Of a stretch of DNA of 64,000 nucleotides, positions 5,548 to 45,879 are shown piece by piece. Source of the DNA: Epithemia pelagica (lineage: Eukaryota > Protista > Bacillariophyta); NCBI GenBank assembly GCA_946965045.2, contig OX337241.1, positions 1,178,001-1,242,000 of the forward strand. The letters run 5' to 3'. The first letter of the stretch is position 1. Each line of letters begins with the position of its first letter. Both the position numbers and the translations under genes were made by a program. The notes beneath the pieces were generated by a model that was not told the origin of the DNA, did not search any database, and saw only the letters and a program-made list of their open reading frames with translations.

Positions 5548-5595
5548 GCGTCTAAGGAGGTTTTTTGAAGATAAGTGACTGGAATTCCACCAACA

Positions 5596-6192: not shown

Positions 6193-6925
6193 GGTAAGCC
6201 AAGTCGACAAGACAACAGTGAGAGTTCGTTTTGTCGTTTTCCTATATGCCCACTAATCATTTTCTTCTGTTTCCATGAAAACCCAACCATGTGATCGCTG
6301 TTTGGCAACTATTTCTTCCCTCCTATCATCCCACAAGACAATTTTCAACGCTTTGAACGACTGGATGGTGGTTCTGTTTGAAAAAGGGCGAAGACACCAA
6401 GTTGGTGCACCCATTTCATTCTCCCATCAATTTCCATCGACCAAAACTGGTTGGATTGCTGGATTGCCGCTGCTTCTTCCCTCCTATTATCCCAGAAGAC
6501 CATTTTCAACGATCTGAACGGTCGGATTGGTGAGGATTCTATTGAACAAAGGGCAAAAAGGTAAGCCAAGTCGACAAGACAACAGTGAGAGTTCGTTTTG
6601 TCGTTTTCCTACATGCCCACTAATCATTTTCTTCTGTTTCCATGAAAACCCAACCATGTGATCGCTGTTTGGCAACTATTTCTTCCCTCCTATCATCCCA
6701 CAAGACAATTTTCAACGCTTTGAACGACTGGATTGGTGGTTCTGTTTGAAAAAGGGCAAAGACACCAAGTTGGTGCACCCATTTCATTCTCCCATCAATT
6801 CCATCGACCAAAACTGGTTGGATTGCTGGATTGCCGCTGCTTCTTCCCTCCTATTATCCCAGAAGACCATTTTCAACGATCTGAACGGTCGGATTGGTGA
6901 GGATTCTATTGAACAAAGGGCAAAA
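6193..6925. repeat. Tandem duplication of about 367-368 bp (2 copies), containing a diverged 105-bp monomer
   Basis: ggtaagccaagtcgacaagacaacagtgagag occurs at 6193 and 6560, and gacaccaagttggtgcaccc at 6393 and 6761. Confidence 0.9.
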
Positions 6926-8342
6926 GACACCAAGTTGGTGCACCCTCTTCCTTTACCCCTCCATCTCCATCGACCAAGACCCTGTTGGATTGCTGTGTTG
7001 CTACCCCTTCTCAATTGGAACAAGGGCCGAGACACCAAGTTGGTGCACCCATTTCCTTCACCCCTCCATTTCCATCGATTAAAACCCTGTTGGATTGCTG
7101 TGTTGCTACTCCTTCTCGATTGGAACAAGGGCCGAGACACCAAGTTGGTGCACCCATTTCCTTCACCCCTCCATTTCCATCAACCAAGACCCTGTTGGAT
7201 TGCTGTGTTGCTACTCATTCCCGATTGGAACAAGGGCTGAGACACCAAGTTGGTGCACCCTCTTCCTTCACCCCTCCATCTCCATCGACCAAGACCCTGT
7301 TGGATTGCTGTGTTGCTACTCCTTCCCGATTGGAACAAGGGCTGAGACACCAAGTTGGTGCACCCATTTCCTTCACCCCTCCATTTCCATCGACCAAGAC
7401 CCCGTTGGATTGCTGTGTTGCTACTCCTTCTTGATTGGAACAAGGGCTGAGACACCAAGTTGGTGCACACATTTCCTTCACCCCTCCATTTCCATCGACC
7501 AAGACCCCGTTGGATTGCTGTGTTGCTACTCCTTCTTGATTGGAACAAGGGCTGAGACACCAAGTTGGTGCACACATTTCCTTCACCCCTCCATTTCCAT
7601 CGACCAAGACCCCGTTGGATTGCTGTGTTGCTACTCCTTCCCGATTGGAACAAGGGCTGAGACACCAAGTTGGTGCACCCATTTCCTTCACCCCTCCATC
7701 TCCATCGACCAAGACCGTGTTGGATTGCCGTGTTGCTACTCCTTCCCGATTGGAACAAGGGCCGAGACACCAAGTTGGTGCACCCATTTCCTTCACCCCT
7801 CCATCTCCATCGACCTTGACCCTGTTGGATTGCTGTGTTGCTACTCCTTCCTGATTGGAATAAGGGCCGAGACACCAAGTTGGTGCACCCATTTCCTTCA
7901 CCCCTCCATCTCCATCGACCTTGACCCTGTTGGATTGCTGTGTTGCCACTCCTTCTCGATTGGAACAAGGATCAAGACACCAAGTTGGTGCACCCAATTT
8001 TCACTCCTCCATCACCATCGACCAAGACCTTGTTGGATTGCTGTGTTGCTACTCCTTCCCTATTGGAACAAGGGCCGAGACACCAAGTTGGTGCACCCCT
8101 CTCCATCCCTCCTTCATCTACATCGACCAAGAAGACCCCATTGGATTGCTATATCTTGATTGGTGGTTCTGTTGAAGGGCCGAGACACCAAGTTGTTGCG
8201 CCCCCATACTTCTATCTTCTATCTCTATCGACCAAGACCCTATTGGATTGTTGTATTTGCTACTGATTCTTGACTGGAAGGACCGAGACATCAAGTTGGT
8301 ACACCCATATCCCTCACTCCTCCATCCCTATCGACCAAGACC
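6926..8342. repeat. Tandem array, 105-bp unit, about 13.5 copies
   Basis: gacaccaagttggtgcac recurs at 6926, 7031, 7136, 7241 and onward at 105-bp spacing. The last copies are degenerate. Confidence 0.95.
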
Positions 8343-8460
8343 CTCCAGGGTTTCCATCACGCAAGCTTGAGAAACGGTAGTATCAAGTTGCATCGGAACC
8401 CTGCATCGAAAGAAAATTTCTCCTCGTTTCTTCCCCAAGCTGATTGAATCGCACGTTAAT

Positions 8461-11400
8461 ATGGCTGATTCGGTAGAAGATTCCGATCGATATTTCCCAG
8501 ACTTGATATGTTATGAATATACAATCGAGTGGTATCGTTCTGTTTATTCCAACACTGATAATTGGACAGATTTCTCCACTACATATGGAGGTGAAACCAT
8601 ATTCGTATCCCTCTTGCGCTGTGGATCAAGTATTTTCAGTGATATCGCCTCGCATGCTGCTGTTTGTTTCCCGAAGATACTGAGACTTGTAGAGACGATC
8701 GAAGAACAACAAGAGGGAAACAAGAGTGACGGAGCTGGTAGTTTTATTTCACCAGGAATCGACCTATTCGAACAAACTCTATATGGAGACGCACTTCGTC
8801 TGTGGGACAAGGAATTCCCGTCAACGACAAGATCAAAGTCGAGCGCAAGCTTTACTCGATCCCTCAAGGTGTTTCTTGGAGCTCATCCTATGCTCGCTGA
8901 TATTGTCCTCAACTCGTATTCGATGGAGAGACGGCTTAATGTCGTGGCTGCAAAAATATTGGACTACATGACGTCTGATAGATCGAAGTTTCGGAAAGAC
9001 AGAACAATAGCAGTCCGAGAAATGGTTTGGAGCGTTCAACATATGGCAGCTGTCTATCGGGTATTGGAATCTGACTCCTATGAAATGGAAGGAGTCGATG
9101 TTGAAAAAGCATTAGCCCTTACACTTCCTGATTGCTGGTTTCGTCCTTATTTTGACATACCAAGAGCTGCTAAGTATCCCGCGAACGACTATTCCAATTT
9201 GGCGGTTCTAATTTCATATTACCAGACGATGGAACGGGAATACGCTACAAAGACGAAGGAGTATCAGAAGGGGCGACATGAACAACGATCTCAAGACAGG
9301 AAACGCCGTAAACGAGCGTCAGACAGTAGATGTGATGGTGCAACAAGTTCTACCATTTTCACTGTTTCAAATAACGAGAGCAAATCACCATCTCAGTCTC
9401 TGTCGGCGACTGAGGAGGATCGGAGTTCCATTTTTGATACTCTTGCATTGAAAAAGAAACCACAAAAAGGAAAACAAGCGACGACAAAAAAAACTTCCTC
9501 TCAATCAAAGGTGGGTCTGTTGGAAAGTAAATCACATGTTGACCACGGTAGCGACAAACCTAAAGGAATACCAAAGAAACCACCTCCTCTCAAGAATAAA
9601 CCTGGTCCATCAGACGACCTTGCATCTTTCACTAACGACCGTTTGATTCATATGGCTAACTGGTCCCTCAAACAGTCGATGTCAGCGATCAATGAAGCTT
9701 GGGATCTCTGTAAAGAAAGTGCCGTTCGACGTAAGGGAAGCATCCATGAAGTTGTTTTGCGATTTGTCTTTACCTGTGCTTGCTGTAACAACAAGAATGG
9801 TTCTCTACAACATGACAATGGGAAAATGGACGTCCTTTTTGTCCCACATCGCCAGTACAGACGAAACCTTTTGCTACGGACGAATACTCAAGAGACGACT
9901 GAGTTTAAGGGGATCCCTCCCCTCATATTCAGGTCGATGCTTGTGCTGGTGGTTCATAAATGGCACAACAAGTCCGTTTGCTTTGAGCAAATTGACGAAG
10001 ATAGTCTGAGAATGGACACAACGACTGCAATGGATTTGAGTTCGTCATCTTCCGATACTACATTGGTCGTCGTCACTACCAAGTATGAAGCTTTTGATCC
10101 CGTCTTAATCCTCTTACAAGCACATCAAAGAGAAGTGTTGATATTTGATCCATTATCGACAAGGGATATTCGCTCGTGGAGGCCTACAGTGATTCGATGT
10201 CTACGGAAACTAAGGCTATTGGACGACGAAAAGAAAATCCAATCATTCTTGAGCGTTGATATAAAGGAAGAGCTCGTTGGATGTGACTGGAGATTCATTT
10301 ATAAGAAGTATCCGAATCCGGTGGCACCAAGTGCGTGTACGCTTCCCCAAGTATCAATCATATGTGTGATCGACGAGATCCTGTCAAAGGCGTCCCCTAA
10401 TATGTCCTGTGATCAGATGATGGGGAAATGGGCTCAAGAATTGCCATCGTGTAGGCGAGAATGTCACAAGGCCTGCAATCATATCGTGAGTACGGCTATC
10501 AATAAAGCGAAACGTGATTCGACTCTGCGTGTATGTTTCAAGGACGTTAATGACGATACACGTCCAAGGATCAAACGCAGTCGCCGGTTTATAATGGAAG
10601 GGAAAGATCGAGGGGAGGTAATGGAAGATATGCTGGATTCCGACGATGAACGATTCGAGGACATTAAAGTGATACAAGAGATTACAGAAGCGGACAAGGC
10701 GCTCGAACGACTTCACGAAGATCGGCGATTTTTGGATCTGGTACGAACATTGAACGATGAAGATCAGAAAGAGGCACTCTGTTCCACTTGTGGGACTTCA
10801 TTGCTTAAAAAGGATCTGGATAGAAGTCAGACCTTTTCTATCGTGAGTTGGACAAGGCAAGAAACCTCCAACTGTCCTCATTATCATTGTCCAACATGTA
10901 CTTTCATCCGGAATTCGGTGAAGAATCGATTTTGTTCCATATGCGGTCATATGCATGCTGAGCTAATACGACACGATCTACATGAGACAGAATTAATCGC
11001 GAAGAAAGACAAGACAATCGTCCTAGATGAATATGATGAAGACTCCGAACAATATTGTGCCATATGCCATGGACAGCGTCCTAACGACTGTCGGATCGAG
11101 AGATGCGGGCACAAGTTTTGTCGGGTGTGTCTTGGTCAAGTCCTTACCACCGAAAAACAAGTTCCTATGGGGAAACAGAAATCGACACCTCCTGAAATGA
11201 ACGAGAGTTGCCCTTTGTGCAACGGAGATATTGCTTCAATTACGTACACCAATGTACATGATGGTTCAGTTGAAGAAGTTGGCGTGTCAAAAGAGGAACA
11301 TCGTGGTCTCTACAGACCGGTCCCTGTATTTCCAGAGACAGCATGGGGTCGTGTACCGTTGGAAACTCTCCGTTTCATGAGTAAAAAACAGCAAAAGGAG

Positions 11401-11472
11401 AAGAATAGGAGAGACCAAACTGCATCTTCTACTGTCACGATCAGTAACACAGAAGCGAAAAGGCAAGTCTGA
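8461..11472 (+). CDS. Large cargo protein with two C3HC4 RING-like fingers; probably exon 1 (8461-11462) of a RING-TET/JBP fusion
   Basis: 1003-aa ORF with CSTC...CPHYHCPTC...CSIC and CAIC...CGHKFCRVC...CPLC, and basic NLS-like patches. Confidence 0.75.
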   Translation: MADSVEDSDRYFPDLICYEYTIEWYRSVYSNTDNWTDFSTTYGGETIFVSLLRCGSSIFSDIASHAAVCFPKILRLVETIEEQQEGNKSDGAGSFISPGIDLFEQTLYGDALRLWDKEFPSTTRSKSSASFTRSLKVFLGAHPMLADIVLNSYSMERRLNVVAAKILDYMTSDRSKFRKDRTIAVREMVWSVQHMAAVYRVLESDSYEMEGVDVEKALALTLPDCWFRPYFDIPRAAKYPANDYSNLAVLISYYQTMEREYATKTKEYQKGRHEQRSQDRKRRKRASDSRCDGATSSTIFTVSNNESKSPSQSLSATEEDRSSIFDTLALKKKPQKGKQATTKKTSSQSKVGLLESKSHVDHGSDKPKGIPKKPPPLKNKPGPSDDLASFTNDRLIHMANWSLKQSMSAINEAWDLCKESAVRRKGSIHEVVLRFVFTCACCNNKNGSLQHDNGKMDVLFVPHRQYRRNLLLRTNTQETTEFKGIPPLIFRSMLVLVVHKWHNKSVCFEQIDEDSLRMDTTTAMDLSSSSSDTTLVVVTTKYEAFDPVLILLQAHQREVLIFDPLSTRDIRSWRPTVIRCLRKLRLLDDEKKIQSFLSVDIKEELVGCDWRFIYKKYPNPVAPSACTLPQVSIICVIDEILSKASPNMSCDQMMGKWAQELPSCRRECHKACNHIVSTAINKAKRDSTLRVCFKDVNDDTRPRIKRSRRFIMEGKDRGEVMEDMLDSDDERFEDIKVIQEITEADKALERLHEDRRFLDLVRTLNDEDQKEALCSTCGTSLLKKDLDRSQTFSIVSWTRQETSNCPHYHCPTCTFIRNSVKNRFCSICGHMHAELIRHDLHETELIAKKDKTIVLDEYDEDSEQYCAICHGQRPNDCRIERCGHKFCRVCLGQVLTTEKQVPMGKQKSTPPEMNESCPLCNGDIASITYTNVHDGSVEEVGVSKEEHRGLYRPVPVFPETAWGRVPLETLRFMSKKQQKEKNRRDQTASSTVTISNTEAKRQV

Positions 11473-11569
11473 TCTATATTATTAGTACTCTCGATCAAAA
11501 GAAGAGACATTCTAGTTTCAGGTATTTGGCATTTCTATCCGCGTACTAACTATGTCTTTGTACTACAAG

Positions 11570-13595
11570 AAGTTCGGAAACGACAAGCACACATCCTAGA
11601 GCGGAGGTGACATCCATAAAGAAGAAACATATTCGTCCCACTTTCGAAGATATGGCATCGGATCAGACGATTTCGAGACTCACATGTACACAGGAGACAT
11701 ATGCCAAGTACGAAAAGAAGAAAACGCAACGTATAAGTGAAACAGTGGTCACCATGTCGCATCGGAACGAAAGTGCACACGAAAGAATGTGCTACTTTGT
11801 CTTGGACAAGGACATCGATCGAATAAGGATGCTATCGCATCTACTGCAGCGTTGCTTTGGAAGTTACGACGATCAAGATTGTTTTGGTTTGTCGTTCGAA
11901 AAAGAGATGATACAACGGAAGGTCGATATGAAAGATATCCCGAGTGTCTTTGCACGTATCCCAGAAATATACAACAAGGCTATGGATGATGTTGTGGAGA
12001 CAAGAGATGACGTTGTCAGTCATTCGAACATTATACCAGAATGTTGTCCTATGATTGTAACTCAAATCCCGGTGGGTCTTGTAACAAAAACGATCCACAA
12101 TGCATTCATATTGGAATGTACCTTGTCGAGGACAAGATATAGAGAAATCAGGAAAAAGACAACACATGTGTCGTCCTCTATATTCGAAGATCCTGTCATG
12201 ATGATTCGGACTAACAAAAATTTATGTCTTGACGAAAATGATCACCTCTTCAGAGATATCATTATCCTCTTCCCTTTGGCTGGGGTTTTTTATACATGTG
12301 TGCGTCAATTTCAAGAACTATCAAGGTCGTCCAACATCACATCGTCATCAGTCCCACTACCGTTGTCTTGGTTACGTCTGCGACACAAAGATGGCCAACC
12401 TGCAAGTAATGCATTCTTGAAAAAAATTCATCGTTGTTGGAGTCTAGATTGGGGTGAACATCTTACTAATAATGACAAAACTGTGAAGGAATGTTACCAA
12501 TGGTCCGATGTGGAGGATGGGAGCCCACTTTTACCTCCTGACGTGTACCTCGATGACAAGGGAAAGATCGAAAAGCCAGGGAATAAACAGTCGATGACAC
12601 ATCACATGTCACGGGAACAATATCGAACAAGGCTGATTATAAACAGGAATGACTCAGATAAGAAAGGGAGTCGGAGATATGTTAGTGGTGCTTTGCATCG
12701 AAACCTATGGTTGCAAATGTCGTCCGGTACACACCCAAGGCCACTGGTATACGACCATCGTATTCGGGGAAACATTACTTTCATTGTTCGGACACGCCGA
12801 AATGATGGGAGACCAGAGTCACTTAGTTACATTCGAGTGACATCCCTGTTACGGAAAGACCAGACGTTGTTGGACCTATTACACAACAGAGCAAGGGAAT
12901 TTACACGTACTGGGTCTCTGAGAAAGGCGGCCAATGCCAGATGTAATAAGGGAGACTTAGGATCTATGACTACTGTTGGTAATACTGCGGCAAGAGGAAA
13001 CGGTTCTACTTTCGTTTCCGAGAAATTATTTACAAAGGACAAGACATTATCGATGATACTGCCGAAAATAAGTACAGCGGCAAAAAGGTTTTGTGAACGC
13101 GAATATCCTGGGGTGATTCCAACATTCCGGTATCTAGAAGATTCAGCTGGCGAAGAAATGCCTAGTGAATTCGGAGGAAGAGTCGGAGGTATGACCTCAG
13201 CCATTACCCTGAGTTTGAACCTCATGAACACGACACACTATGATGTTCACGATGGTTCTGTTTCATTCGCAATCTGGACAGAGACAATCCCAGGTGACTC
13301 TCAAAATTGGTTCTTTGTTTTGCCGAATATTCTTGTGGAGTATGATGGTACTACATACCATGGTCTTTGTATACAACTATTTCATGGGGTTTCGGTTCTA
13401 TGGGATGGACGTGTGATCCGGCATGGAACGTCAATACACACACAAAGACAACATACAGATGGGAACATGAAGAACGACACTATTAGTTGGTTTTGGGCAG
13501 TAAGTTCCAGGTCTATGAATGCAACTGTCAACGAAACAAGAGAGGACCATGGTATAACCAAAACGGTTCAAGGCATTCGTAGCGGAACATTATAA
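11570..13595 (+). CDS. TET/JBP-like Fe(II)-dependent dioxygenase domain protein (ORF 11607-13595; predicted exon 2 starts at 11570)
   Basis: NLMNTTHYDVHD gives an HxD motif (His codon at 13236). It is followed by WFFVLPN, GVSVLWDGRVIRHGTS (distal His codon at 13422) and a final strand TISWFW. The spacing fits the double-stranded beta-helix of TET/JBP enzymes. Confidence 0.65.
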
Positions 13596-23379: not shown

Positions 23380-26300
23380 TCATGATCCAGCAGTGTTACG
23401 ATCTTTTGTTGTTGTTTGTGAAGGATCTGATGATGATGTATATCTTGCTCTCAACGAATCACTTGCTGAGTCATTGAACTCATTGGCCCATTTACTGGCA
23501 GGAAGTACCTCCCATACAATATCGGAATAGTTCCTGTGATTCCGAGTATATTCAAGCAATATTTCTCTTTCCGCATCAGAATGCAGGTATTCCGGTACCT
23601 TATCTCGGTGTTGGATCATTTCCGGGTTTTCATCGATCACTCCTACCAATTCAACTATATTGGTGATAGGAACCAATACAAGATCGGGAACACGGGAATT
23701 CCGGGTAAAGGCCTTGCTCCATCGAATGAAAAGGACGGAGGACTTCTCTTTATCCTTGTCACTACGACGATAAGTGGTTCGTAGTAAAGCATGTGTGACA
23801 TCTCTCGGTTTTTCTTGGTGGATTCTTGATGTACGAGCATCATTTCCCTGTTCTTGCATGTGACCAGCACTTTCCCGTTGTTCCCATGGTCTGCGTATGA
23901 AGCATAAAACCTGACAGAGTACCAAGATATTGTCTGTTCCCTGATTACCTGTTGCAGTGTCAGTGAATGGTGTTCGCTGGTGTCGTGGGATCCATGCTTT
24001 CACCCAGTCTCTCCAAGGACCCTCACTTTGGTAATTAGGATGACATCGGATACCACCTATGTTTTCGTCCCTGAATTTGACCTCTGTACACCCATGGATC
24101 ATGATGTAATCACTTGTGTCATTCTGTTGTATAATATTCATTTGTGTGAAGAGTGCACTTGCATGTTTCACCAGGAAGTCAAGGATTACTTTTGGGAGGA
24201 TCATACCGGTATTTGTTTTCGAAATATACTTGTAAGTACACTTGACCACGGGGCTCTCTGTCCGTCCAAATCTGACCAATTGGATTTGTATTGTTGTCCC
24301 TCGCCCCTTGAATTTACATCTATCTTCTTCACCGTCCTCGTCATTTTCCTTGCCACAATGGTTGGAGATTGACCATTTTTTAGTAGCTCCACGTCATCTT
24401 GTTTGATCCCTGATGCTTTACAGAGCAGATCCCATGCCTGCATCTGCCATATGTTATCACCAAGTTGACTGTCGAAGACACCCTTACCCCGCTTTTGTAC
24501 TGTTTTGGCATTCAGTTTGACAATTTCTTTGTGGTTACTCTCCTCTGATTCAGTGTCGGATATTTTAACTGGGCCGAAATTGGACACCTGTCGAACTATA
24601 TGTACCAAGTTGTGGTATTTTGGGATCATCCAACCATTGCACATCAGTTTCCCTTTTTTATCCAATCGTGGTGCATACCGCCGTATACCATCCATCATTA
24701 TCTTGACAGATTCAACTGATCGTCGCGCTGTTTCCTTCGCGGCAGGAGAACGTGGGTCGCTATCCCAAAATCTATCCATCCTTGTCCAGCTGTTGAAACA
24801 GAGTATTGTCTCAAACAGGAAGAGGAAATCGAGATATGGTTCCCGTTCACCTTCATCCCAGATCGATGCATATGCCACAGGGTCATCGTCGAATACTGTT
24901 TCGCTCGTAACCTGTACCTCAATGTCAGGTTCACAATATTGGTAATCTTCATTTTCCTGTACATGAACGGGCAGATTGTCGTTGATATTTGTGGTTATTT
25001 CTTCGTTACTATCATCCACAGGTGAGTCATTCTCATCCGAATCGGATGAAGCATCAGCGATACTGTGGTGTACAACCGGGTTTTTTTTCGATTGTCGTTG
25101 ACGTTTATTGTTGGTAGTGGATACGTTGTTTTGTCCAGCGCCCATTCGTTGTCGTTTTTTCTTTTTTTTTTCTAATTCATTTTTCTTTCTCTTCCGTTCT
25201 TTCTCTTCTTCCTTTTTCTTTCGTCTCTCTTCTTCTTCTTTGCACCATTGTTTCCACTCTGCAACTACTTTTTTCCATTTCTCCGCCATAGTCGAAGCGA
25301 AAATAAGATGACCACGAACAGAAACACACAAAGCGGCTGAGACAAACATAATACCAACCCATTCATTGGCTGTTACCTTTGTAACATTACTGATACCTGC
25401 AGAGAAGGATGTTCTGGGGTACCCCCAACTAGAAGAATAAGAGAATATCGACTGCCGGTTGGCTCGGAAGAAAGAGCTGTACAAGAAATCAAACATGGCT
25501 TTTTCTCTCATTGTCATCAGAGCAAAGAAATCAGTCATGATATATTTCATGATCCCCGATTTCAAAGTATGTAATACATCACAACATGCCGCGGTAAAAA
25601 TCCCATGTGTTTTATTAACACCCTCACCCAAATACAAATGGTTGTAGATGTTGTTCACTGGGTATTGTCCAATCTGATGTAAAATTTTCTTGGAATTGTT
25701 CACAGGTTCTCTCCAAGGATCCTCTCTCGGATCATCTATGCCGGGTTGTCCAGAATCGATAACTATTGGGTTTCCTGATGGTTTATCTAAACCAAGCACA
25801 CGGAGGCTTCTGAAATGGATAGGGTTTTTGAAGAGGTAGTTGCATGTGGACCATGGGTATCTAGACTCCCGAGGTGTGCAATCACACTGCCAAACAAGCC
25901 GGCCAACACTTTGATGATGAGATGCATATCTTCCTGCGATGTTATCTTGTGACTTCGCATCTCCCTTTATCATGATCACGGGTAATACTAATCTCACCAC
26001 CTTCTCGATCCCATGGATCCGTAATCGCATCCACAATCCACCTCGATTCTGTATCTTCAAAAGAGCTTGGTGTATTCGCGAGAGCTGTGCATGATAATTC
26101 CGACAGGGGGACCCCCTATCCAAGATGTATTTGGCCGCAGATGACTTCCGTTCCATATCTGTGATCAACCCTAAGATGATTTGTCTATTCGGTTTTCGCA
26201 TTTCAGACATCGTCAAAAATGAAGGTACCATAACAACTGGTTCCGCATTAAAGCGACCATCCCCTGTCGCGTGTGTCTTATCCATATAAGACAATAAACC

Positions 26301-27476
26301 AACAACGAAAGTATCGTTGTCATGTCTGTATTTCCGTACGGTACGTTGGAAAACATGGCCATCTTGTATGTTTTCGAGACATTTATTCGGTGTATAAGGG
26401 CGATACGGGTCGTCATCACATAATATTGTTTTATCCTTGGAAGTGGCTTCAGGATCTTGCAAGACACGTCGAAGTTGATGCACAAAATCAAATATAACGG
26501 TATCAACGGACTTCTCACTGTCTGGAACGATTATATCCTTTTTGGTTGTAACTTCCATTGGGACGGTGACAATCTTTGGTTTGGGGAAATCGAAACCTCT
26601 TTTTTCGAATTTCGCCATGAATCCCTTTCGCCGTGGATGTTTTTTATTGAAAAAACGTGAGCCACAACACTCGTTAGTATAATCAATCCATGCCAAAATG
26701 GCATCGAACATGAACTTCGGACACCCAGCATTCCGGAGGAGTATGGCCAACCTCAATAAAGCCTTGTCATCTTCGGAAAATTGGAGACCATTTTGTTCAA
26801 GATACACTGGAAATTCCAAAGGATTGTCTTTTGAGTTTTCATCGATAACATGGTCATCACTGGATGAACCTTTGCCTTGGACATCCTCATTGTCATCGAC
26901 AGTTTGTTGGAGCCCATCATCATGATCTGCTGATGGTCCCTCTTCTTGGTCCTCATCTGATTCTTCCTCATTCTCAGATGACAGCAAGGAATGAGCAATA
27001 TTTGTACTATTCCGACATGGCTGTCTCACGATGGGTTGTTTTTGTGTAGTGGGTTGCAGATCCTCTCTTTCCTCATCTTCTCGATCGTCCGCCCAGGGTA
27101 TCCCTACAGCACCATTGTCGGTTACTCCATTTTCTGAAATGCCTACAGCACTATCATCGGTTCCTCCATTTTCTAAATGATTTCCCTGATCTTTATCATG
27201 AGAGGTATTGTTCTCGACACCAGCAGTTTCGTGGCATATCATGGACGATTCGTGCTCCAATGCATGTGAGACCAAAGTGCCGTTTTCTCTTTTGGTGCTA
27301 CAAACCCTTTCATGTTGGAAGATCCCGGAGACGTGGAATAATACATGACAATTTCTACATTTACGACATGGAAGAATGGAACCACCTGTACTCGCATTTG
27401 GATCTTCGCCTACCCATTGATCTTTGATGACGGAAGGTTTATTTCTTAAATACCTTGGTTTACAAGGACGGCCCAT
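23380..27476 (-). CDS. Plavaka/CMC-family transposase, split by a -1 frameshift near 24375 (ORFs 24201-27476 and 23380-24279)
   Basis: N-terminal CxxC...H zinc-finger-like motif, YMDKT, KGDAKSQD, CDVLHTLKSG, PKYHNLVH, FGP and TESEESNHKEIVK. The second ORF supplies the C-terminal CHPNY..GPWRDW motif. Confidence 0.8.
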
Positions 27477-27910: not shown

Positions 27911-30238
27911 ATGTCGCCCCCTTCTGAAATAAACCAGGGGACCAAGAATAGAAAACAAGGAAGCCAACGCTGTGGTGATCCAAAGCAAGATAAAAAGGAC
28001 AACCAAAACAGTAAGAATTCAGCGTTCCATGGTTTATCTGGTGGCAAAGATGTTGGAGAAAGCAGTACCGATGATGAAACAGACGACGAAGAAATAACGA
28101 TCAGAGATGTCAACAAGAAGAATAGCAATGATGACCGTAACCAAGAGGATTCAGGATCCGTATCTGAAAAGAGTCAGGTAATATATCAGGAAAGAGGAGG
28201 ACGGGGAGCTTCATCCAACGAATCCCAGGACCAAGGTAGTACCATGAGCTGTACAGGAACCCGTGGTGTTACTAATACAGGAGCACCTATGGAATCCGAA
28301 CACAATACTGCTGTTATGAATGGAGTCGACCATGGTCAGCGAGTTCCTTATAATGCGAATGGAGTTGCTCCATATCCGAATCATACCCATCCTTATCCTC
28401 ACCAGCAACCAAATCCATCGGTGTTGTCATTTCTTCCTCAAGGGCAACAACAACATCAGGTCCATACACAGTTCAATTATTCCCAAGCTCCTCTTGGGGG
28501 GCAACAACATCATCATTTCCCGGCGGCGTCATCATCTACGATTTATCCACAACAAGGAACTGGTATTATGGTGCATCAAGGATACCCACAACAGCAGATG
28601 ATGTCTGTCCCATACCCACCCAATGGGGGCGTTCTGATGCAAGGAGGCGCTGGTGTTCACCAACCACAGCAAACACATCACCATATGGATACAAATAATA
28701 TTGAGTGCGCAGCTAATGACAATGGTGGTGTGACTGTAATGTCGCACCAAGATGTTGAAAATATTATGGAAGAGGTTATGGGTGGTGGTGGTGGTGGTGG
28801 CGGAGGAGTCAGTCGCGTTTGTAAGTAAGGTGTACTTCCTTTGTTTTGTTTGTGCCCTATCGGTATTGACTGGTTAGAGTGGAACTCTAATCTGGGTTGA
28901 TGTGGGTTTGGAAATGTACAATCGAAAAAGATGTGGACTTCTGGATGGATGATGTTTCCTCACTTTCTGATCTCTCTTGGTCGTCATCATCTCTTGTAGC
29001 CATGGAAGTCGGAGGCGATAGCTCAATGGTTGCATCATCTATCTATGGTACTAGTGATGGTCAGAGTTCTGGGGCTAATGCAACGTCTGGTGAGAGGGAA
29101 AGAAGGAGAGAATACAAGAGGGAAAGAAAGAGAGAACAGCAAAGAAAGAGCAGGAGCAAATACAAGGATCTACCCTTAGCTTGTCGTACGGATGAGTTCC
29201 AGACTTTTGTGCCTGATGTTGCTTGGAGGTACGTGAAGTATTTCTCACTTGCCGATGATTGTGATGCAGATGATAATGGATTATGGCATTTGGGGAAGGA
29301 TCACTTCAAGGCGTATTTCGAACGAGAAAAGATTATTGGTGATGTGGCTAAGGCAAAGTGGTGGGAAAGGTATTCCCCCCATTTGAGGAAAGAATTCAGA
29401 CGCAAGAGATCAAATGTTCTACAATCGCTAAGGTTCAGGTTCATGAGTAAGTTGGTACTGTCTTGGTGCTATCTTGTTCTCATTCTTGTGGAAAGTTTTG
29501 TTCTAACATGAGCCTTCCTGCCTGGCAGAACATTTCTCGTTAAATCTATGGAGAACACATGGTGGTGGAATTGTTCCGCGACAATTCCCTAAGTTATTGG
29601 TTGACGATGAAAATCTAGGTCCTATGCCAAGTCTTGAAGAGATGATGCAAATGAGAGGAGTGAATGGAGACAATGATGCTTATGTTTTCATGTTTGAAGT
29701 ATTTGGGGGGTCGGTTTATGGAGATGGAATGGTGAGAGATATCATTAATCAAGATATTACAGCTAATACACCAGAAGCACAAAAGCAAGCAATATGGAAG
29801 GAAGCGATGAGTAAGTTTACTACGAGTGATGAAGCTTTCATTCTCTTGGCTCTTGAAGATTCATGGGATGCATGGGCTCTGAGGAGCAGACAAGAGTTCA
29901 AACAAAAGTTGTACAAAGAAGACCCTGCTTGGTGTCAAGCGCACCAAATTAATGAGGACATTGATACAGATGGAGTAGAACAATACAAGTATTCAGGTTG
30001 TGCAAACAAAAAGGGACGTGGTATGAGTGATATTGGCCTTGATCGTCTTGATGAATTGCAGCAGAAGGTGAGGGATGATCGAGAATATGTATCAGTTGAT
30101 GGACTGTTTCAGAGACAAAATGTGTTCATGGAGAATCTTCTTAAGAAACATCGGGAGAGGATGGGATATGTGGACAGTGCTGATCAAGATCAACCGCAGC
30201 AGAAAAAGCGGAGGAAGCACGGACTCTGGTTTTTTTAA
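27911..30238 (+). CDS. Spliced transposon accessory protein; predicted exons 27911-28820, 28931-29446, 29529-30238
   Basis: GTAAGT donors at 28821 and 29447 and AG acceptors ending at 28930 and 29528 join three ORFs in frame. Q/P/H-rich N-terminus and C-terminal TSDEAFILLALED..W and KY..G...G..R motifs. Divergent from the transposase. Confidence 0.6.
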
Positions 30239-30883: not shown

Positions 30884-33022
30884 GGATTGTCGTTGGACAG
30901 GATATTCCAATTCATGGACGACATTCTTGGTATTCTGGATGCCAAGACATTGTCGTTTCGACAGGCCTATCGTCAAGCGCTCAACATCACCCAAGTAATG
31001 CACCGGATAGTCCCTATCAATGGCGACTTGCATGTGCGCTTTCACATGCTAGACGTCATTTATAGAATATTCTACGGTGGATTTCTTCAATGCTTTCAAT
31101 GGAGACTCAAGTGGAAGCGTTTGGATGCCAATGACGTGTCTCATACATACCGTCTGACCCATCGCTTGGCCGTCCTTGTTTTTGAGGAACTCGACAGGTT
31201 GATGCTTGATTTCTACGTCGCCAAGGTCTTAACGTTGAGCAAAGTAGATGAAATCCTCCATTTTGGTGATGGCAACGAATTGGCCATCTTTATTTCAAAG
31301 GAATATGTGAACTACCTGAACCAACAAGTGAGAGAATCAAAACACTGGTTAATGCGATTCTTGTGCAACTACCTTGTGCTCATGCGCAAGTATCTTACCT
31401 TCCTTGAGGCCGAACAACAAGGCGACGCAATCATAATGGAATCTATCATCGTGGAGTACCTTCCGTATTGGTACATCACCAAGAAACGTGTGTCCTTCAA
31501 TACACAGCTACGCTTGATAGAGCTGTATTATTATCGTCTTCCTATTTCCGTCTTGCAGCAGATCCGCCTCAACCGAACAAAGTGTCAAAAGCAAATGCCG
31601 AGTCCTGTTCTAAACAAGGAAAGTGCCTTGGACCAAATAATGGAGCGACTCATGCCCTTTTTCAAGGGCATGAGTCACAATGCTACTGAGATGGAGTTCG
31701 TTAAAGTGTCTAAGATGTTGACAGCTTGTCAGCGCTCTAAGCACTTTCTCGAATTCTATACACCGACTCGATCTGACGCGGAATATGAGCTGGCTGAACG
31801 GGAAAAAGAAATGATGAATGATACAACGCAAAATAAGGACACGAAGGTGCTTGTTGATCCTGGCCAACGACACAAGGCCACCACCAAGCCGTCAAATCTA
31901 ATGAACCGCGTCCTTGTAATGGAGATTCTCACCCTGGCCGGATGCCACGATATTGCACCAGACAAAGAGACGCCTGTTGACAAGAATTGGTTTTGGCAGT
32001 CTATCGAGTCGACGACCCTGGAAGTACACAAGAAAAAAACCAGGATTGATAATGGCAAGGTGGAAACGGATGCGACAGACAAATACGTCATGATCCAGGT
32101 TAACAAGATGATGGAAGGTTTGAGGAAGCGTCCGTCCCGAAAGAAAAAGGACGACACGGAAGAGAAGAACGAAAGTAGCGAGTCCAACTCAGAGGATGAC
32201 AGTGACGATGATGGCAACGTAGAATCCAACGATGACAATACCAAGGATGGCGAGGAAAGCACGGTCATTGATTTGGAAGCTGAGATGAAAGAATACAACG
32301 ACGAATGTGGGTCTGAAGCACATGGTATGTCGTACTTCAGCGACGACAAGGTGGCTGTTGTAGACGTCGAGAACGAAGCTTCAAGGTTCGCCATGAATCA
32401 GGAGGAAGCCCTGGATACAGTGCCTATTGGAGACTCGGCATTTGATGAGTCCATGGAGATGTCGCGCCAAGAGGAAGAGAATGAAGATGTCGACGTGATT
32501 CGGAACGGCACCCAAAAAGATGACGAGGACGAGATTCCTGAAACACAAATAGAGGAATTGATAATGGAAGATGCTGATGAAGTTGTGGACGATGACCAAG
32601 GCATTGAGGACGACGCTGAAGAGAGCAGTGATACGGAGGCAACAGAGTCTCCTTCCAATGACAGCCAGAAGGAACCAGCGGAAGTTAATCAGACCCTCAA
32701 CGTCAAGAAGAATGTGAAAGGAATGAAGGTGTGGGAGATGAATGACCTGGCTTGCAAGGACATAGTATCCGTAGCCTTACAGAAAATGGGAGAGAAGCAT
32801 ATATTGGATGCAAGGCAACGAGATGCCGAACGTAAGGAGCGGGAAAACCATTTCTTGCGTTTTAAACTTTATAATCGACTCGTCGAGATGGAAGAGAATT
32901 CTGCCCGACTTGGGTGGGACGAGGAAAGTACAGGTATGGAAGATGACGACATAATGGATGAAGACCCTTTAGACCGGGCGGGCAAGTACTTTGAAAATTA
33001 CAAAAGAAATTGGAGAACTTAA
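30884..33022 (+). pseudogene. Academ-like (DUF6589-like) transposase, C-terminal part
   Basis: Begins G-L-S-L-D-R immediately after the Plavaka right end, contains GDLHVRFH, and has an acidic tail. In frame with 2413-5547, giving about 1757 aa. Confidence 0.8.
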
Positions 33023-33075
33023 TTACTAACGGTACTACATGTTAAAATGATACTGGACAGTAGAGTGGCGTGTGG

Positions 33076-35250
33076 TTATTCCTTTGTAGGTAAGCTCTTG
33101 AAACCTGTCCATGAATCCGGATCATTAAGGCGTGGGTTCCCATTATCCATATAGCCAAGCTTTACAAGTAGATGTAGACCGTCAACCTCGGGTTCCAGAA
33201 TTTGGGCACAGAAGCACTTGATTATAAGTGCTTTGGTTCTTTGCCTAACATACCGGTTAGTTGTCAAACCCAAAACGGATTTCGGGAAAGCTTTGACTGG
33301 CTTACCACCAGGACCTGGAGTCTCTATGGAGAGGAGCTCGTCAAGAAAGCAGTCTTTGTGTAGGGAGAGCCTTGAAGAGGGTACCTTATCAGTGATGAAC
33401 AATCTCACGAGATATGCCTTGAAGTTTTCTATGTTGATTGCCGCATCAAGAGGCGTAGTAATCCGTGGTTTGGCACACCTCCAACAGGCGCCCCCACAAG
33501 ACGTAGGAATGTCACATTGTGTCTGTCGATGTGGATTCAACATCATTTGTTCCAACGCAAAATGCACGCAATGCCCGTCGTCCAAGCAAATAAGCGCTAT
33601 AACCTTTCGAATAGCGTTCCATTGGCGTTTTGCTAACGCATCAATGGACAACATGGTAGTAGATTTCATTGTAGAGGTAGGATTGCTTGACTGTTGGGAT
33701 GCCGCAGGTTTGTCGGACGCCTGTTTTCTTTTGGCAGCTTCGTATTTAGGTATAAGAAACACCCTCGTCATGAGCGCGACAAGGCTGTTTAGTGATATGA
33801 TCATGGTGAAGGAGGAGGTGTTAAAGGTTGCGGTCACGCTGCGTCCGCATCGTCCAGAACACTGAATCAGATCCTCCAGGCTCTGAGGGAAGCCATGGAA
33901 AATCACTGCGTCCACTTCATGGCAATCAATACCAGAGCTCGTGGTTCCAGCAGTAGCGAAGTATCCTACCGGGTCAAAGCGGAGAAGGCGTCGGGTGGTC
34001 GGACAGGTTTCCACAAGGGGCTTTCCCACGAAAAGATTTGTGTTGTGGAACTTTTGTTCCCTGTACATGTTTCCATGTACCAACACGAGATCTTTTTGGA
34101 TTCCCAGTACATTCAGCTGGTGTCAACATTTTTGATGAAGGTCGATAATGGCTTTCCGTGAATTGGAATATATCATTATCTTCCTTCCACCGGATGCACG
34201 AGATATTCTTACGAGGTCCCTCTTTATGCGACGAAGGGGGGTATCTTGAAAGCAAATGTTAAGCGATGTTGCGACGCTCTACCCCTGAGTGGCAATGGGG
34301 CCAAATAAGATCGTTTGTGGGACAGAAAGACAACCCTGTTAACGCTTCAAGGTCAGACACCATTGTCAGCGAGGCGGTAGCTGTCATGAAGAGAATGGGA
34401 ATTGGTGTAGTGGCCCAACGCTTGGCACACTGAAAGAGAACCTGCTTGAGGTCACTGAATTCCTGACGAAACTCCATGCCGTGACATGCATAAAGATGGC
34501 ACTCGTCAACAGCAATGAATCGTAAGGTTCCGTTTTGGAAACATTTGGTAATGGTTTGGCACCACTGAGGGTCTCGCGTCAACTTTTGGGGGGAAGAAAA
34601 CAGAGCGATTGTTGTTTTGGATTCTGGAGACAAACTCTCCAACCGTTGGCGAAGAAAGTCGTTGTTGTTGGTGGACCGTATGACATCCAAGTTAAAGACA
34701 CGAAGACGCTTGCCCAGGCCTTGATTGGAAGACAGATTTGTTAACTTCGAGGTTTGATCTGCTGATAGACTCAACAGAGGCACGATTGTAAGCGTGATGC
34801 CGCCGCATATGAAGCCACATACATCGCGTACGGCGGACTTTCCCCACCGGTGGACCGAACAAGGAGCAATGGACGCAAACGTTGAGAGGGAACGCGTTCG
34901 ACGTGACGACGGAGGACTTGTTGGCATGCCAGCATCTGCCACGGTCGAACGGTCTTCCCATGCCAGTCTTTGAATGATGCCTCGATGGACCTTGCAAGAT
35001 CAGGGGAGTCTTCGGAATGTTCAATCAAAGGGTCAGGTACGGAGTGTACCTCTTCGATGGTCGGCAAAGAGGCATTTGGGGCTTCGGAAGGATGGTCATC
35101 CATTTGGTTGTTGTTCGGTTGTTGTTGGTTGTATTGGTATGGAGCGATCGAAGCCGTCTGCAGGACTGGGCGCTCTATTTCAACGCCGTGGGGGTCCCTT
35201 GAGGTAGTAGAGACCACTTGTGCATGTCGGGGAGGATTGACAGGGTCCAT
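33076..35250 (-). pseudogene. RecQ-like SF2 helicase of the AcademH element, with three lesions
   Basis: Walker A TGG(G)KS is broken by a missing G at 34842-34845. PLLSLSADQ, SSPQKL, VDECH and MTATA are present. There is a frameshift near 34260, then IMIYSNSRK, an in-frame TGA at 34123-34125, and ATAGTTSSGID and QCSGRCGR. Confidence 0.85.
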
Positions 35251-44142: not shown

Positions 44143-45879
44143 TTAAAACAAGAGCGTAAAGGCATGTTCGACCCGTCCTTCGTCGACCAATTCCCAGTGC
44201 AATTCAAGCGCCAAGAGAGATAAGACGGTATTCAATTCGGTCGTGGCCAAGGCTTGTCCAAGGCAATTGCGTGTTCCCAAGGCAAAGGGCAAGACCGCTT
44301 GGACTTGATCCACCGATGCATCCTTCCATCGAAAGGGATCAAATTCCCTCGGACGGTCGGGAAAGACCAAGGGACTCTTGTTCATGACGTACTGGGGCAT
44401 CAATACCACGGAATTCTGGGGAATGACCATGACTGGTTCGTCGTGTTTGTCGTCCGTAGTCGTCGGATTGTTGCTGCTGTTCGTGTTCCATGAAGAAGCT
44501 GTCAGTGGTACCTCAAAGTCTCGTCCAGTGATACGTCCCGATCCAAAGGCAGCCACAGGTAGAACCCGATTGCTTTCCTTGAGGAACCATTGCACGTAAT
44601 TGACTTGGTCCTGTGTATCGTTCTGGTTCTTTGTGTTGTCGTTGTTTTGTTGTTGTTGCTGTTGCAAGGCTTGTACAACACGATCTTGCCAGTCGGGATA
44701 TTTGGCCAAATGGTAGAGGGCGGCTGCGACACTAAAGCCGGTCGTATCGTGACCACCAACCAAAAAGACGATCAATTCCGCCACTTTTTGACGATCGCCA
44801 CAGGCTGTCAAATACTCATTCTCTTCAATCAATCGAATGACTGTAGCCTGCGACGATTGTCGTCCCTCGGCCACCAAGTGACGATAGTGCTGCAAGAGTT
44901 GGACTCCCAACTGGTACAAATCGTCACAGGCCGCAAAGACGGCTTGTCGTTCGGGCAAAAAGGGCGTCGCAAATTGTCGCAACGGATTGGCTCCTTGTTT
45001 GCGATCAAATTCCAACATGCCCAAGTCCAAGGCTCGTCCAAAAATGCGAATTTCGGCATTGGTAATGTGGGGATATTCCAGGGCCGCCTCACAAATGATA
45101 CGAAAGGTCAAGTGAATCATTTCGGAATAAATGTCAATGGATTCTTGTTCTGGTTGTTGTTGGTTTTGCTGTTGGATCCACTGGTGAACATGAGTTTCCA
45201 CCACTTGCTTCATGCGTTGGACTTAATTGGCCGAAAAGGCCGGTGCCGTCGCTTTGCGGACCATTTACCAATGGGCATTGTTGGGACTGGTAAAGAAGGA
45301 CGTTCGACCAGCCGTAACGGCATTCATGGGTTCGTACAAGAGGGATGCCTTGTCGGTTGTGGCATCCGTCAAGATTGTTCGGGCCAAGCCGGGATGACCG
45401 ACAATGTACAAGGTACAGGGCCATCGAGGAATGAGAATGCGATAGACCAAGGACTGCAATTGGTTCGATTGATCCAACAAAAACTCATGACTGGTCGGAG
45501 TGTCCAATTGCAACAAGGTCTTCAATAAGCCTTCTGGATTGCGGGGAATGGGCTTGGTTTTGCGACGATGACGATGAGTGTCCTGGTCGTCCGCCGCCAA
45601 GAACAAGGGGCGATACCAGGCCGTAATGGCCGCCGTCACCAAAACAGTGCTCAGAGCCGTCCCTACCCACAACCACGACCCAACTACCGGTGCCAATGGA
45701 TCGTTACGTTGGTGGTGCTTGTCCCTTTGGTTGTTCATGGGACGAAGAGCAAGAACCGAGTTGAACCACCCCAACGTCCACATTGTGGATTCGTGGTAGG
45801 AACAATCTGGGAAAAACTGCGTCGTCGCACAGTGTCTCTCACTCTTCTCTTTTCTCTGCGATCGCTCCGGTTCCGACAA
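44143..45879 (-). pseudogene. Cytochrome P450 with two in-frame TAA codons
   Basis: N-terminal TM anchor, W..VRKA.APAF, GGHDTT (I helix), KESNR (ExxR), FDPFRW and FALGTRNCLG (heme Cys). Stops at 45265-45267 and 45223-45225 lie in the same frame. Confidence 0.8.

Follow-up and report, generated by a model that had tools for sequence, protein, structure and literature searches.

The stretch of Epithemia pelagica DNA analysed here (64,000 nucleotides (nt); GenBank assembly GCA_946965045.2, contig OX337241.1, positions 1,178,001 to 1,242,000 of the forward strand; hereafter the window) contains two neighbouring open reading frames (ORFs) on the forward strand. The first, ORF1, encodes a protein with two RING fingers, and the second, ORF2, encodes a TET/JBP-like dioxygenase. 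The question raised by this locus is whether these are two genes or two exons of a single one. Our best reading, made from the DNA sequence, is that one GC-AG intron joins them into one protein of 1675 amino acids (aa), and we consider it probable that this intron is spliced and yields a RING-RING-TET-like protein, at least from intact copies of the gene. The best explanation for the RING-TET gene as a whole is that it is an accessory gene of a many-copy Plavaka-type (EnSpm/CACTA) DNA transposon, the link to a transposase being provided by the neighbours of a nearby ORF in a protein language model.

ORF1 (8461-11472; 1003 codons, with its ATG in the context AATATGG) ends in ...GAA GCG AAA AG/G CAA GTC TGA, where the slash marks the predicted exon-intron boundary, 8 nt ahead of the stop codon. 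The 5' splice site, AAG/GCAAGT (11460-11468), agrees perfectly with the consensus save at position +2, its GC at +1/+2 being accompanied by strong flanks, and it leaves 11462 as the last exon base, in phase 2. According to the ORF list and the translation, the coding part of exon 1 therefore spans 8461-11462 and comprises 1000 codons plus 2 nt, ending in phase 2. The predicted U2-type GC-AG intron (11463-11569, 107 nt) contains the TGA that closes ORF1 upon intron retention (11470-11472), which would give a RING-only product of 1003 aa. It also contains the branch-point motif TACTAAC (11544-11550), with the branch A at 11549, 20 nt ahead of the acceptor. The tract in front of the acceptor, TATGTCTTTGTACTAC, is moderately pyrimidine-rich, and the acceptor itself is a NAGNAG pair (11568-11572) made up of the first AG after the branch site (11568-11569) and a second, in-frame AG (11571-11572). 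The sequence-only reading on which this work builds had proposed this donor, this TACTAAC and this first downstream AG, and each of their coordinates was correct to the base.

The coding part of exon 2 (11570-13595) consists of 1 nt, 674 codons and a TGA at 13593-13595. It had been claimed that removing the 107 nt would join the two frames into a protein of about 1675 aa, and this was confirmed, the spliced coding sequence (8461-11462 plus 11570-13595) being 5028 nt in length and open throughout, with 1675 aa and a stop codon and without any internal stop. The predicted nucleotide junction is ...GAAGCGAAAAG/AAGTTCGG..., and codon 1001 (AG/A, Arg) straddles it, giving a protein that reads ...TEAK-R-SSETTSTHPR... 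at the junction, i.e. ...TEAK-R-SSETTSTHPRAEV.... The frame of ORF2 opens at 11550, within the putative intron, and from 11470 to 11549 every one of the three frames is closed by a stop codon; the two ORFs can thus be linked by splicing only, and not by read-through or frameshifting. The frame is also kept by many trivial GY...AG pairs in this region, but the 11463/11569 pair alone combines a donor of consensus sequence with a canonical branch site and first-AG geometry. A GT donor at 11522 was considered and rejected, as it lies past the stop of ORF1 and cannot extend it. The GC content of the intron is 36%, against 43-44% in the exons, and a second, diverged family of the element likewise shows a higher AT content in the intron than in the exons. 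U2-type GC-AG introns account for about 1% of introns in most eukaryotes and are over-represented among those that are alternatively spliced. Compared with this class, the GC at +1/+2 is offset here by a perfect match at -3 to -1 and at +3 to +6, and the branch site is canonical in both sequence and distance from the AG, whereas the acceptor of this predicted intron is AAG and not CAG or TAG.

Diverged paralogs of the gene were found in the same assembly by a word search with ORF2. One family, sampled by two copies (L006 and L048), is 28% identical to the window gene at the protein level over the RING portion and 54% over the oxygenase portion, and it also has its RING ORF directly upstream of a TET-like ORF. 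The RING ORF of L006 ends in ...GAG AAA AG/G CAA GTT TAA, in phase 2 like the window donor. A GCTAAC is located 43 nt past the donor hexamer, the next AG closes an intron of 72 nt, and the resulting splice keeps the frame of the TET-like ORF, with 26 open codons. As in L006, a GCTAAC in L048 occupies the place that matches the window branch site. When the DNA of the junction region is aligned, the longest invariant run is AAGGCAAGT, which is invariant in L006 and L048. This identity between the families spans positions -3 to +6 of the donor and ends there (GTC TGA in the window against GTT TAA in L006), and the K, R and Q codons within it show no synonymous variation. Both the preceding tails and the interior of the intron are unalignable between the two families. 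Given that the identity of AAGGCAAGT ends at +6 and that the tails cannot be aligned, we interpret it as the footprint of a splice donor rather than as a conserved C-terminal peptide. The conservation of donor, phase, branch site and acceptor across families thus provides independent support for the intron.

A third family, L007, is decayed but collinear with the window gene, with an ORF1-like part, a RING part, a linker rich in W and G, and a TET-like part. Same-strand ORFs tile 7.8 kb of it and leave no space for another gene, the picture expected of a single long ORF that has suffered frameshifts. A GTA/GCAAGT at position 6186 of L007 was considered as the homologous donor and rejected, since it is in the wrong phase, lacks a branch site and lies inside an open frame. 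The linker between the RING and TET-like parts of L007 (L007:5925-7140, approximately 400 aa) is built of repeats rich in W-G/G-W dipeptides and resembles Argonaute-hook motifs.

The beginning of ORF2 bears on the same question. The first 37 residues encoded by exon 2 (11571-11681) form a linker that is predicted to be disordered, with a predicted local distance difference test (pLDDT) score below 50 in the AlphaFold2 (AF2) model. Within it, the basic motif KKKHIRP (11619-11639) aligns with the N-terminal basic/PQPPGE motif of stand-alone relatives of the oxygenase. The first ATG of ORF2 (11652-11654), which encodes Met-28 of ORF2 and would be the start codon if there were two genes, is not preceded by any in-frame ATG, and KKKHIRP lies upstream of it; in the L006-family homolog, the corresponding position is an Ile. 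Because this conserved motif is located upstream of the ATG at 11652, keeping it in the protein requires that translation enters from exon 1.

With regard to the copies of the gene, the near-identical set comprises the window copy and L001-L005 (six copies), which are 97-99% identical. The donor, the branch site and the acceptor are identical in all six, and both exons together with all signals are intact in the window copy and in at least L005. L001 carries a 344-nt insertion resembling a miniature inverted-repeat transposable element (L001:9019-9362) inside the putative intron, 11-15 nt past the GC donor (window ~11474-11478). This insertion has inverted ends, AAGACTGATTCC...GGAACCAGTCTT, is located at a TA-rich site and is present in this single copy only.

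A number of observations weigh against a fused product. In L048, which is 98.5% identical to L006 and the other copy of that family, both ORFs are intact, at 807 and 882 aa, but 16 nt of linker that L006 has between the acceptor and the first ATG are missing (L048:8415-8550, L006:7850-8001). This indel puts the splice to the proximal acceptor out of frame, and the TET ORF of L048 starts with an ATG of its own. The ancestral state of the 16 nt is not decidable from the two copies of this family, and L006, in which the splice is in frame, is otherwise broken by a Copia insertion, which separates its front part (L049), and by two 1-nt indels. Among the near-identical copies, two distinct deletions of 1 nt are seen in L002 and L003, at window 11389 and 11396, within the A-rich end of ORF1 and with a spacing of 8 nt. 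These are located 67-74 nt ahead of the donor, lengthen ORF1 to 1007 aa and would disrupt the frame of the fusion; they may reflect decay at a hot spot for mutation, an assembly error in a homopolymer, or a tolerance of frameshifts of the kind that two genes would show. The acceptor has an A at -3, AAG being the weakest variant of YAG, where L006 and L048 have TAG. Substitutions in the near-identical set offer little contrast, with 3 of the 107 intron sites varying against 3.3-4.5% in the exons, although these copies are too alike for such a comparison to have power. The DNA-like contigs of three sequencing runs from one study, in which word depth is ~1000 over the stretch and which break at variant sites, contained neither the 11462/11570 joint nor indels, and no intron-less retrocopy was seen among them. 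Finally, the ATG at 11652 stands in a good context, with G at -3 and +4.

Relatives from outside the genome belong on this side of the balance as well. An exhaustive profile search with the oxygenase retrieved 853 relatives, most of which are stand-alone proteins of ~550-640 aa that open with a Met followed by basic residues and PQPPGE. In fungal transposon-borne proteins, too, a Met usually starts the TET/JBP domain (PMC12730594). No RING was found in the same chain in eight proteins scanned among the longest relatives listed, three of which are DEAD/Helicase_C fusions and five of which have no Pfam domain. Likewise, no RING was found upstream at 39 metagenome loci, where most contigs are short. 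The RING-free, stand-alone nature of these relatives indicates that the RING-oxygenase fusion is a lineage-specific arrangement and not the architecture of the whole family, as judged from the sequences retrieved. It had been suggested that the fusion would be refuted by homologs that are always separate genes; in other genomes homologs are indeed separate, whereas in the diverged lineages of the element itself they are not. In other organisms, the oxygenase family is also found at the C-terminus of larger multidomain proteins (P0178, P0145 and P0143). Their partner, encoded in the same uninterrupted ORF, is a DEAD/Helicase_C helicase at the N-terminus, whereas here it is a RING protein that would be joined via an intron.

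Taken together, the gene model in which an intron fuses the two ORFs is supported by the signals of the diverged family and by the N-terminal motif, while the frame of L048 and the deletions in L002 and L003 speak against it. Four other readings were weighed against it. In the first, the intron is real but acts mainly as an alternative-splicing switch, with frequent retention, the 1003-aa RING-only protein as the main product and the fusion as a minor isoform. This would fit the weakness of the GC donor and of the AAG acceptor, the occurrence of a stop codon 8 nt into the intron in both families, and the NAGNAG nature of the acceptor; we regard it as possible, but rather unlikely. Frequent retention is plausible because the splice sites are weak, and it may be seen as a sub-case of the fusion with which it is compatible.

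A second reading holds that there are two cistrons, the RING protein ending at the TGA at 11470 and the TET-like protein starting from the ATG at 11652, by means of a second promoter or of reinitiation on the unspliced transcript, in which case the donor-like block would encode a conserved C-terminal KRQV tail. The context of this ATG, the stand-alone state of the closest relatives outside the genome, which measure about 560-640 aa, the confinement of the L002 and L003 frameshifts to the tail of ORF1, and the situation in L048, where both ORFs are intact, the fusion frame is broken and the TET ORF has an ATG, all favour it. However, an identity that is bounded by the donor (-3 to +6) and devoid of synonymous variation in K, R and Q fits an RNA signal and not a peptide, and the presence of TACTAAC or GCTAAC with first-AG geometry would have to be a coincidence in both families. 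A start at 11652 would also drop the conserved basic motif. Moreover, the stop of ORF1 is only 98 nt from the acceptor and 180 nt from the ATG at 11652, a spacer that is very short for two transcription units and in which a terminator and a promoter would probably hardly fit. We therefore consider two cistrons improbable.

It could also be that the family is a silent relic, no longer expressed, with splice signals that are inherited but unused in the window copy. ORF1 and ORF2 belong to clusters (90% identity) of 17 and 23 members, respectively, all from one assembly in ENA, whose members are often truncated or broken, with lengths of 507-977 aa and 155-620 aa. The giant Plavaka elements of a red alga are, in addition, mostly degenerate and lowly expressed (10.1101/2025.02.11.637652). 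In opposition to this, both exons and the signals are kept in the window copy and at least in L005, and a copy identity of 97-99% points to recent activity, which makes a relic quite improbable too. A chance co-occurrence of splice-like motifs between unrelated ORFs can be practically dismissed, for although neither motif by itself is commoner in the window than chance predicts (AGGCAAGT, 1 occurrence where 1.7 are expected; TACTAAC, 5 where 3.2 are expected), AGGCAAGT occurs a single time in 128 kb (both strands), less than 30 nt from the end of ORF1, the joint placement of a donor near an ORF end, a TACTAAC less than 160 nt further on and an in-frame join has a chance of ~1e-6 by our arithmetic, and the motifs are kept in a family that is 28-54% identical at the protein level.

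The product of the preferred reading, a single fused protein, would begin with the layout of ORF1: an N-terminal region of ~730 aa, two RING fingers and a basic low-complexity tail. RING finger 1 (10780-10944, residues 774-828) was recognized in the translation by a regular expression and has the pattern C-x2-C-x26-C-x-H-x2-C-x2-C-x11-C-x2-C, while Pfam returns only a weak FYVE_2-like match in this region (734-830). RING finger 2 (11056-11220, residues 866-920), also of the C3HC4 type, was likewise recognized by a regular expression, and Pfam returns a match below its cut-off (RING_XB3-XBAT31, E 3.9e-5). The description of this protein as a double RING is thus upheld by two C3HC4 patterns. The Pfam scores of the window ORF1 remain under the cut-offs (zf-C3HC4, 19.9 bits vs 21; RING_XB3, 24.1 vs 50), whereas those of its paralog L048 exceed them (zf-RING_2, 36.9 vs 27.3 in two stretches; zf-C3HC4, 28.6 vs 21), and P0184/L048 shows two RING patterns of matching spacing. 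For residues 1-730 of ORF1, neither a Pfam match nor a usable match in the Atlas feature search was obtained, and the AF2 model of this region, built on a 6-row alignment, is unusable (pLDDT 36). A ULP-like H...D...Q...C pattern noticed by eye in this N-terminus was dropped, since its Cys is not kept in L006 and L007. A word search with ORF1 matched its own 90% cluster alone, and the RING ORF of L006 likewise matched only its own cluster.

The oxygenase half contains a TET/JBP-like double-stranded beta-helix dioxygenase domain (12084-13568, exon-2 residues 172-666). The AF2 model of the exon-2 part, built on 67 relatives, has a pLDDT of 84 and a predicted template modelling (pTM) score of 0.88. 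In a Foldseek search with this model, the top 26 matches in the Protein Data Bank (PDB) are all TET2, CMD1, CcTet or NgTET1, with an E of 1.4e-10 for TET2. VIA-align gives a Z score of 19.0 for TET2 (290 residues aligned), of ~16 for NgTET1, CcTet and CMD1, and of 11.5 for AlkB/FTO. The neighbours in the Atlas fold search include a Bacillariophyta cluster as well as clusters of phage Tet_JBP and of fungal Tet-like proteins. On the other hand, neither ORF2 nor any of the 67 relatives matches any Pfam family at E up to 1, PF12851 Tet_JBP, PF20515 and 2OG-FeII_Oxy_6 included, and no match to ORF2 was found in the PDB by sequence or profile. The earlier designation as TET/JBP-like therefore holds by fold, according to Foldseek, VIA-align and the AF2 model, but not by a Pfam Tet_JBP match; as modelled, ORF2 is TET/JBP-like by fold and not a member of the curated Pfam families.

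The HxD iron-binding motif is located at 13236-13244 (H556 and D558 of exon 2, corresponding to 1557 and 1559 of the fusion); it is nearly invariant in the 67 relatives and invariant in alignment A3. Further downstream (13383-13433), the same alignment reveals a candidate distal His, H605 (LFHG), which is kept in 7 of 8 sequences, and a WDGRxIRHxT block, in which R614, R617 and H618 are invariant. The assignments of the distal His and of the 2-oxoglutarate-binding Arg within LFHG and WDGRxIRHxT are inferred from these sequences and should be regarded as candidates. Human TET2, Naegleria NgTET1, Coprinopsis CcTet and Chlamydomonas CMD1 are the best structural matches of ORF2 (Z 19.0, 16.0, 15.9 and 15.8, respectively, within an overall span of 19.0-15.6; 246-298 residues aligned) and share HxD...H with it. 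In contrast, sequence identity to them is only 9-15%, without a match at the level of hidden Markov models (HMMs), and the N-terminal helical region of ORF2 (~170 aa) has no counterpart in these proteins.

As for the host element, homology of other copies to the window starts sharply at 5548/5549 in three copies (L001-L003). A tandem array with a period of ~105 nt (6559-8344), whose copy number differs among copies of the element, is located directly upstream of the ATG of ORF1. On the other side of the gene, at a distance of ~1.1 kb downstream, a 170-nt satellite begins; the gene of L006, too, is followed by a satellite, with 66% identity. The nearby ORF mentioned at the outset (24204-27476, minus strand, 1091 aa) has no Pfam match, and its neighbours in the protein language model are Plavaka (PF18759) clusters at 0.95.

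The remaining genes of the window provide some context on introns in this genome. The host genes, namely two ferroportins, a DUF1995 gene and a myosin without introns, are in keeping with a photosynthetic protist poor in introns. A test for CTAAC enrichment downstream of GTAAGT/GCAAGT had no power in about 100 kb of the genome, as true donors were too few there and satellite-borne GCAAGT too numerous. Three ORFs on the same strand (27911-28828, 28897-29511 and 29597-30238) look like a single gene with two GT-AG introns. The clearer of the two, a probable GT-AG intron of 82 nt (29447-29528), reads TGA/GTAAGT ... TTCTAAC ... CAG and is the only convincing host reference that we found. The stretch 32982-33060 holds a second GG/GCAAGT donor, followed by TTACTAAC (33023-33030) and by a first AG at 33059-33060. 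This donor is at the end of a 711-aa ORF (30887-33022) with no Pfam match, and splicing would swap its last 13 codons for a terminal exon of 9 codons. This second case suggests that the combination of a GCAAGT donor and a TACTAAC branch site is found repeatedly in the genome. The interruption of a cytochrome P450 gene (44143-45879, minus strand) was rejected as an intron, since the supposed junction is a 1-nt frameshift (HW/K MVRK...) with an in-frame TAA (45213-45270); the gene is a pseudogene or else has been misassembled. DEAD and Helicase_C fragments are found at 33076-34942 on the minus strand, in the ORFs 34262-34942 and 33079-34086. These fragments show no similarity to the helicase-TET fusions, and no TET-like part was found nearby.

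With regard to how the gene may work, ORF1 and ORF2 would be two exons of one accessory gene of the Plavaka-type transposon, from whose transcript the intron at 11463-11569 would be removed, with codon 1001 joined across the junction. The predicted product would consist of the N-terminal region of ~730 aa, the pair of C3HC4 RING fingers, a basic, disordered linker across the junction with a motif of the oxygenase family resembling a nuclear localization signal, and, at the C-terminus, an Fe(II)/2-oxoglutarate dioxygenase of TET/JBP fold whose HxD...H is intact. By analogy, the oxygenase could oxidize a DNA base (5-methylcytosine or T) on the element's own DNA and thereby counter silencing by methylation, while the RINGs may act as an E3 ubiquitin ligase on a chromatin target. 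Whenever the weak GC donor or the AAG acceptor is skipped, the retained intron would halt translation 8 nt in and leave the RING-only protein. Tentatively, then, we envisage a transposon polypeptide that carries a putative E3 module and a TET-like oxidase, whose weak GC-AG intron would switch between RING-only and fused forms, and which might relieve silencing at its own copies by rewriting DNA methylation and ubiquitinating chromatin or silencing factors; this extended proposal is considerably less secure than the splice itself.

Iyer et al. (PNAS, 2014) reportedly described TET/JBP dioxygenase genes that are carried by fungal KDZ, Plavaka and other DNA transposons. Such fungal transposon-borne genes have been proposed to act on the DNA methylation of the element itself (PMC12730594). 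Both there and here, a TET/JBP-fold accessory gene is located beside the transposase, a putative one in our case, of a giant cut-and-paste element. The present case differs in its diatom host, in the lack of a Pfam Tet_JBP or 2OG-FeII_Oxy_6 match, and in the predicted intron that joins the oxygenase to a double-RING protein of ~1000 aa. The giant Plavaka elements of the red alga Bostrychia moritziana carry the accessory genes PAG1-3 (10.1101/2025.02.11.637652). These elements and the present one have in common a size of 17-19 kb, an accessory gene for a 2-oxoglutarate-dependent oxygenase, and adjacent tandem repeat arrays, which are found on both sides of the gene in the window element. In contrast, PAG3 combines a ParB-like part with the oxygenase, and the host lineage is different. 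A fusion of RING and oxygenase is described neither in PMC12730594, where the word RING is absent, nor in 10.1101/2025.02.11.637652. While transposon-borne TET/JBP genes were already known, what is new here is a transposon-borne TET-like oxygenase that is probably fused, via a predicted GC-AG intron, to a double-RING protein, in a diatom.

On this reading, gene calling by ORFs only, as in the public record of the assembly, would split the gene, and a correct gene model is needed ahead of any protein expression or knock-out. If the splice is real, the locus encodes one 190-kDa protein that links a ubiquitin-ligase module to a DNA-base oxidase, and not two adjacent genes. This protein would then be a concrete, testable candidate for an anti-silencing factor encoded by a transposon, in a group of organisms whose enzymes of DNA-methylation turnover are poorly known.

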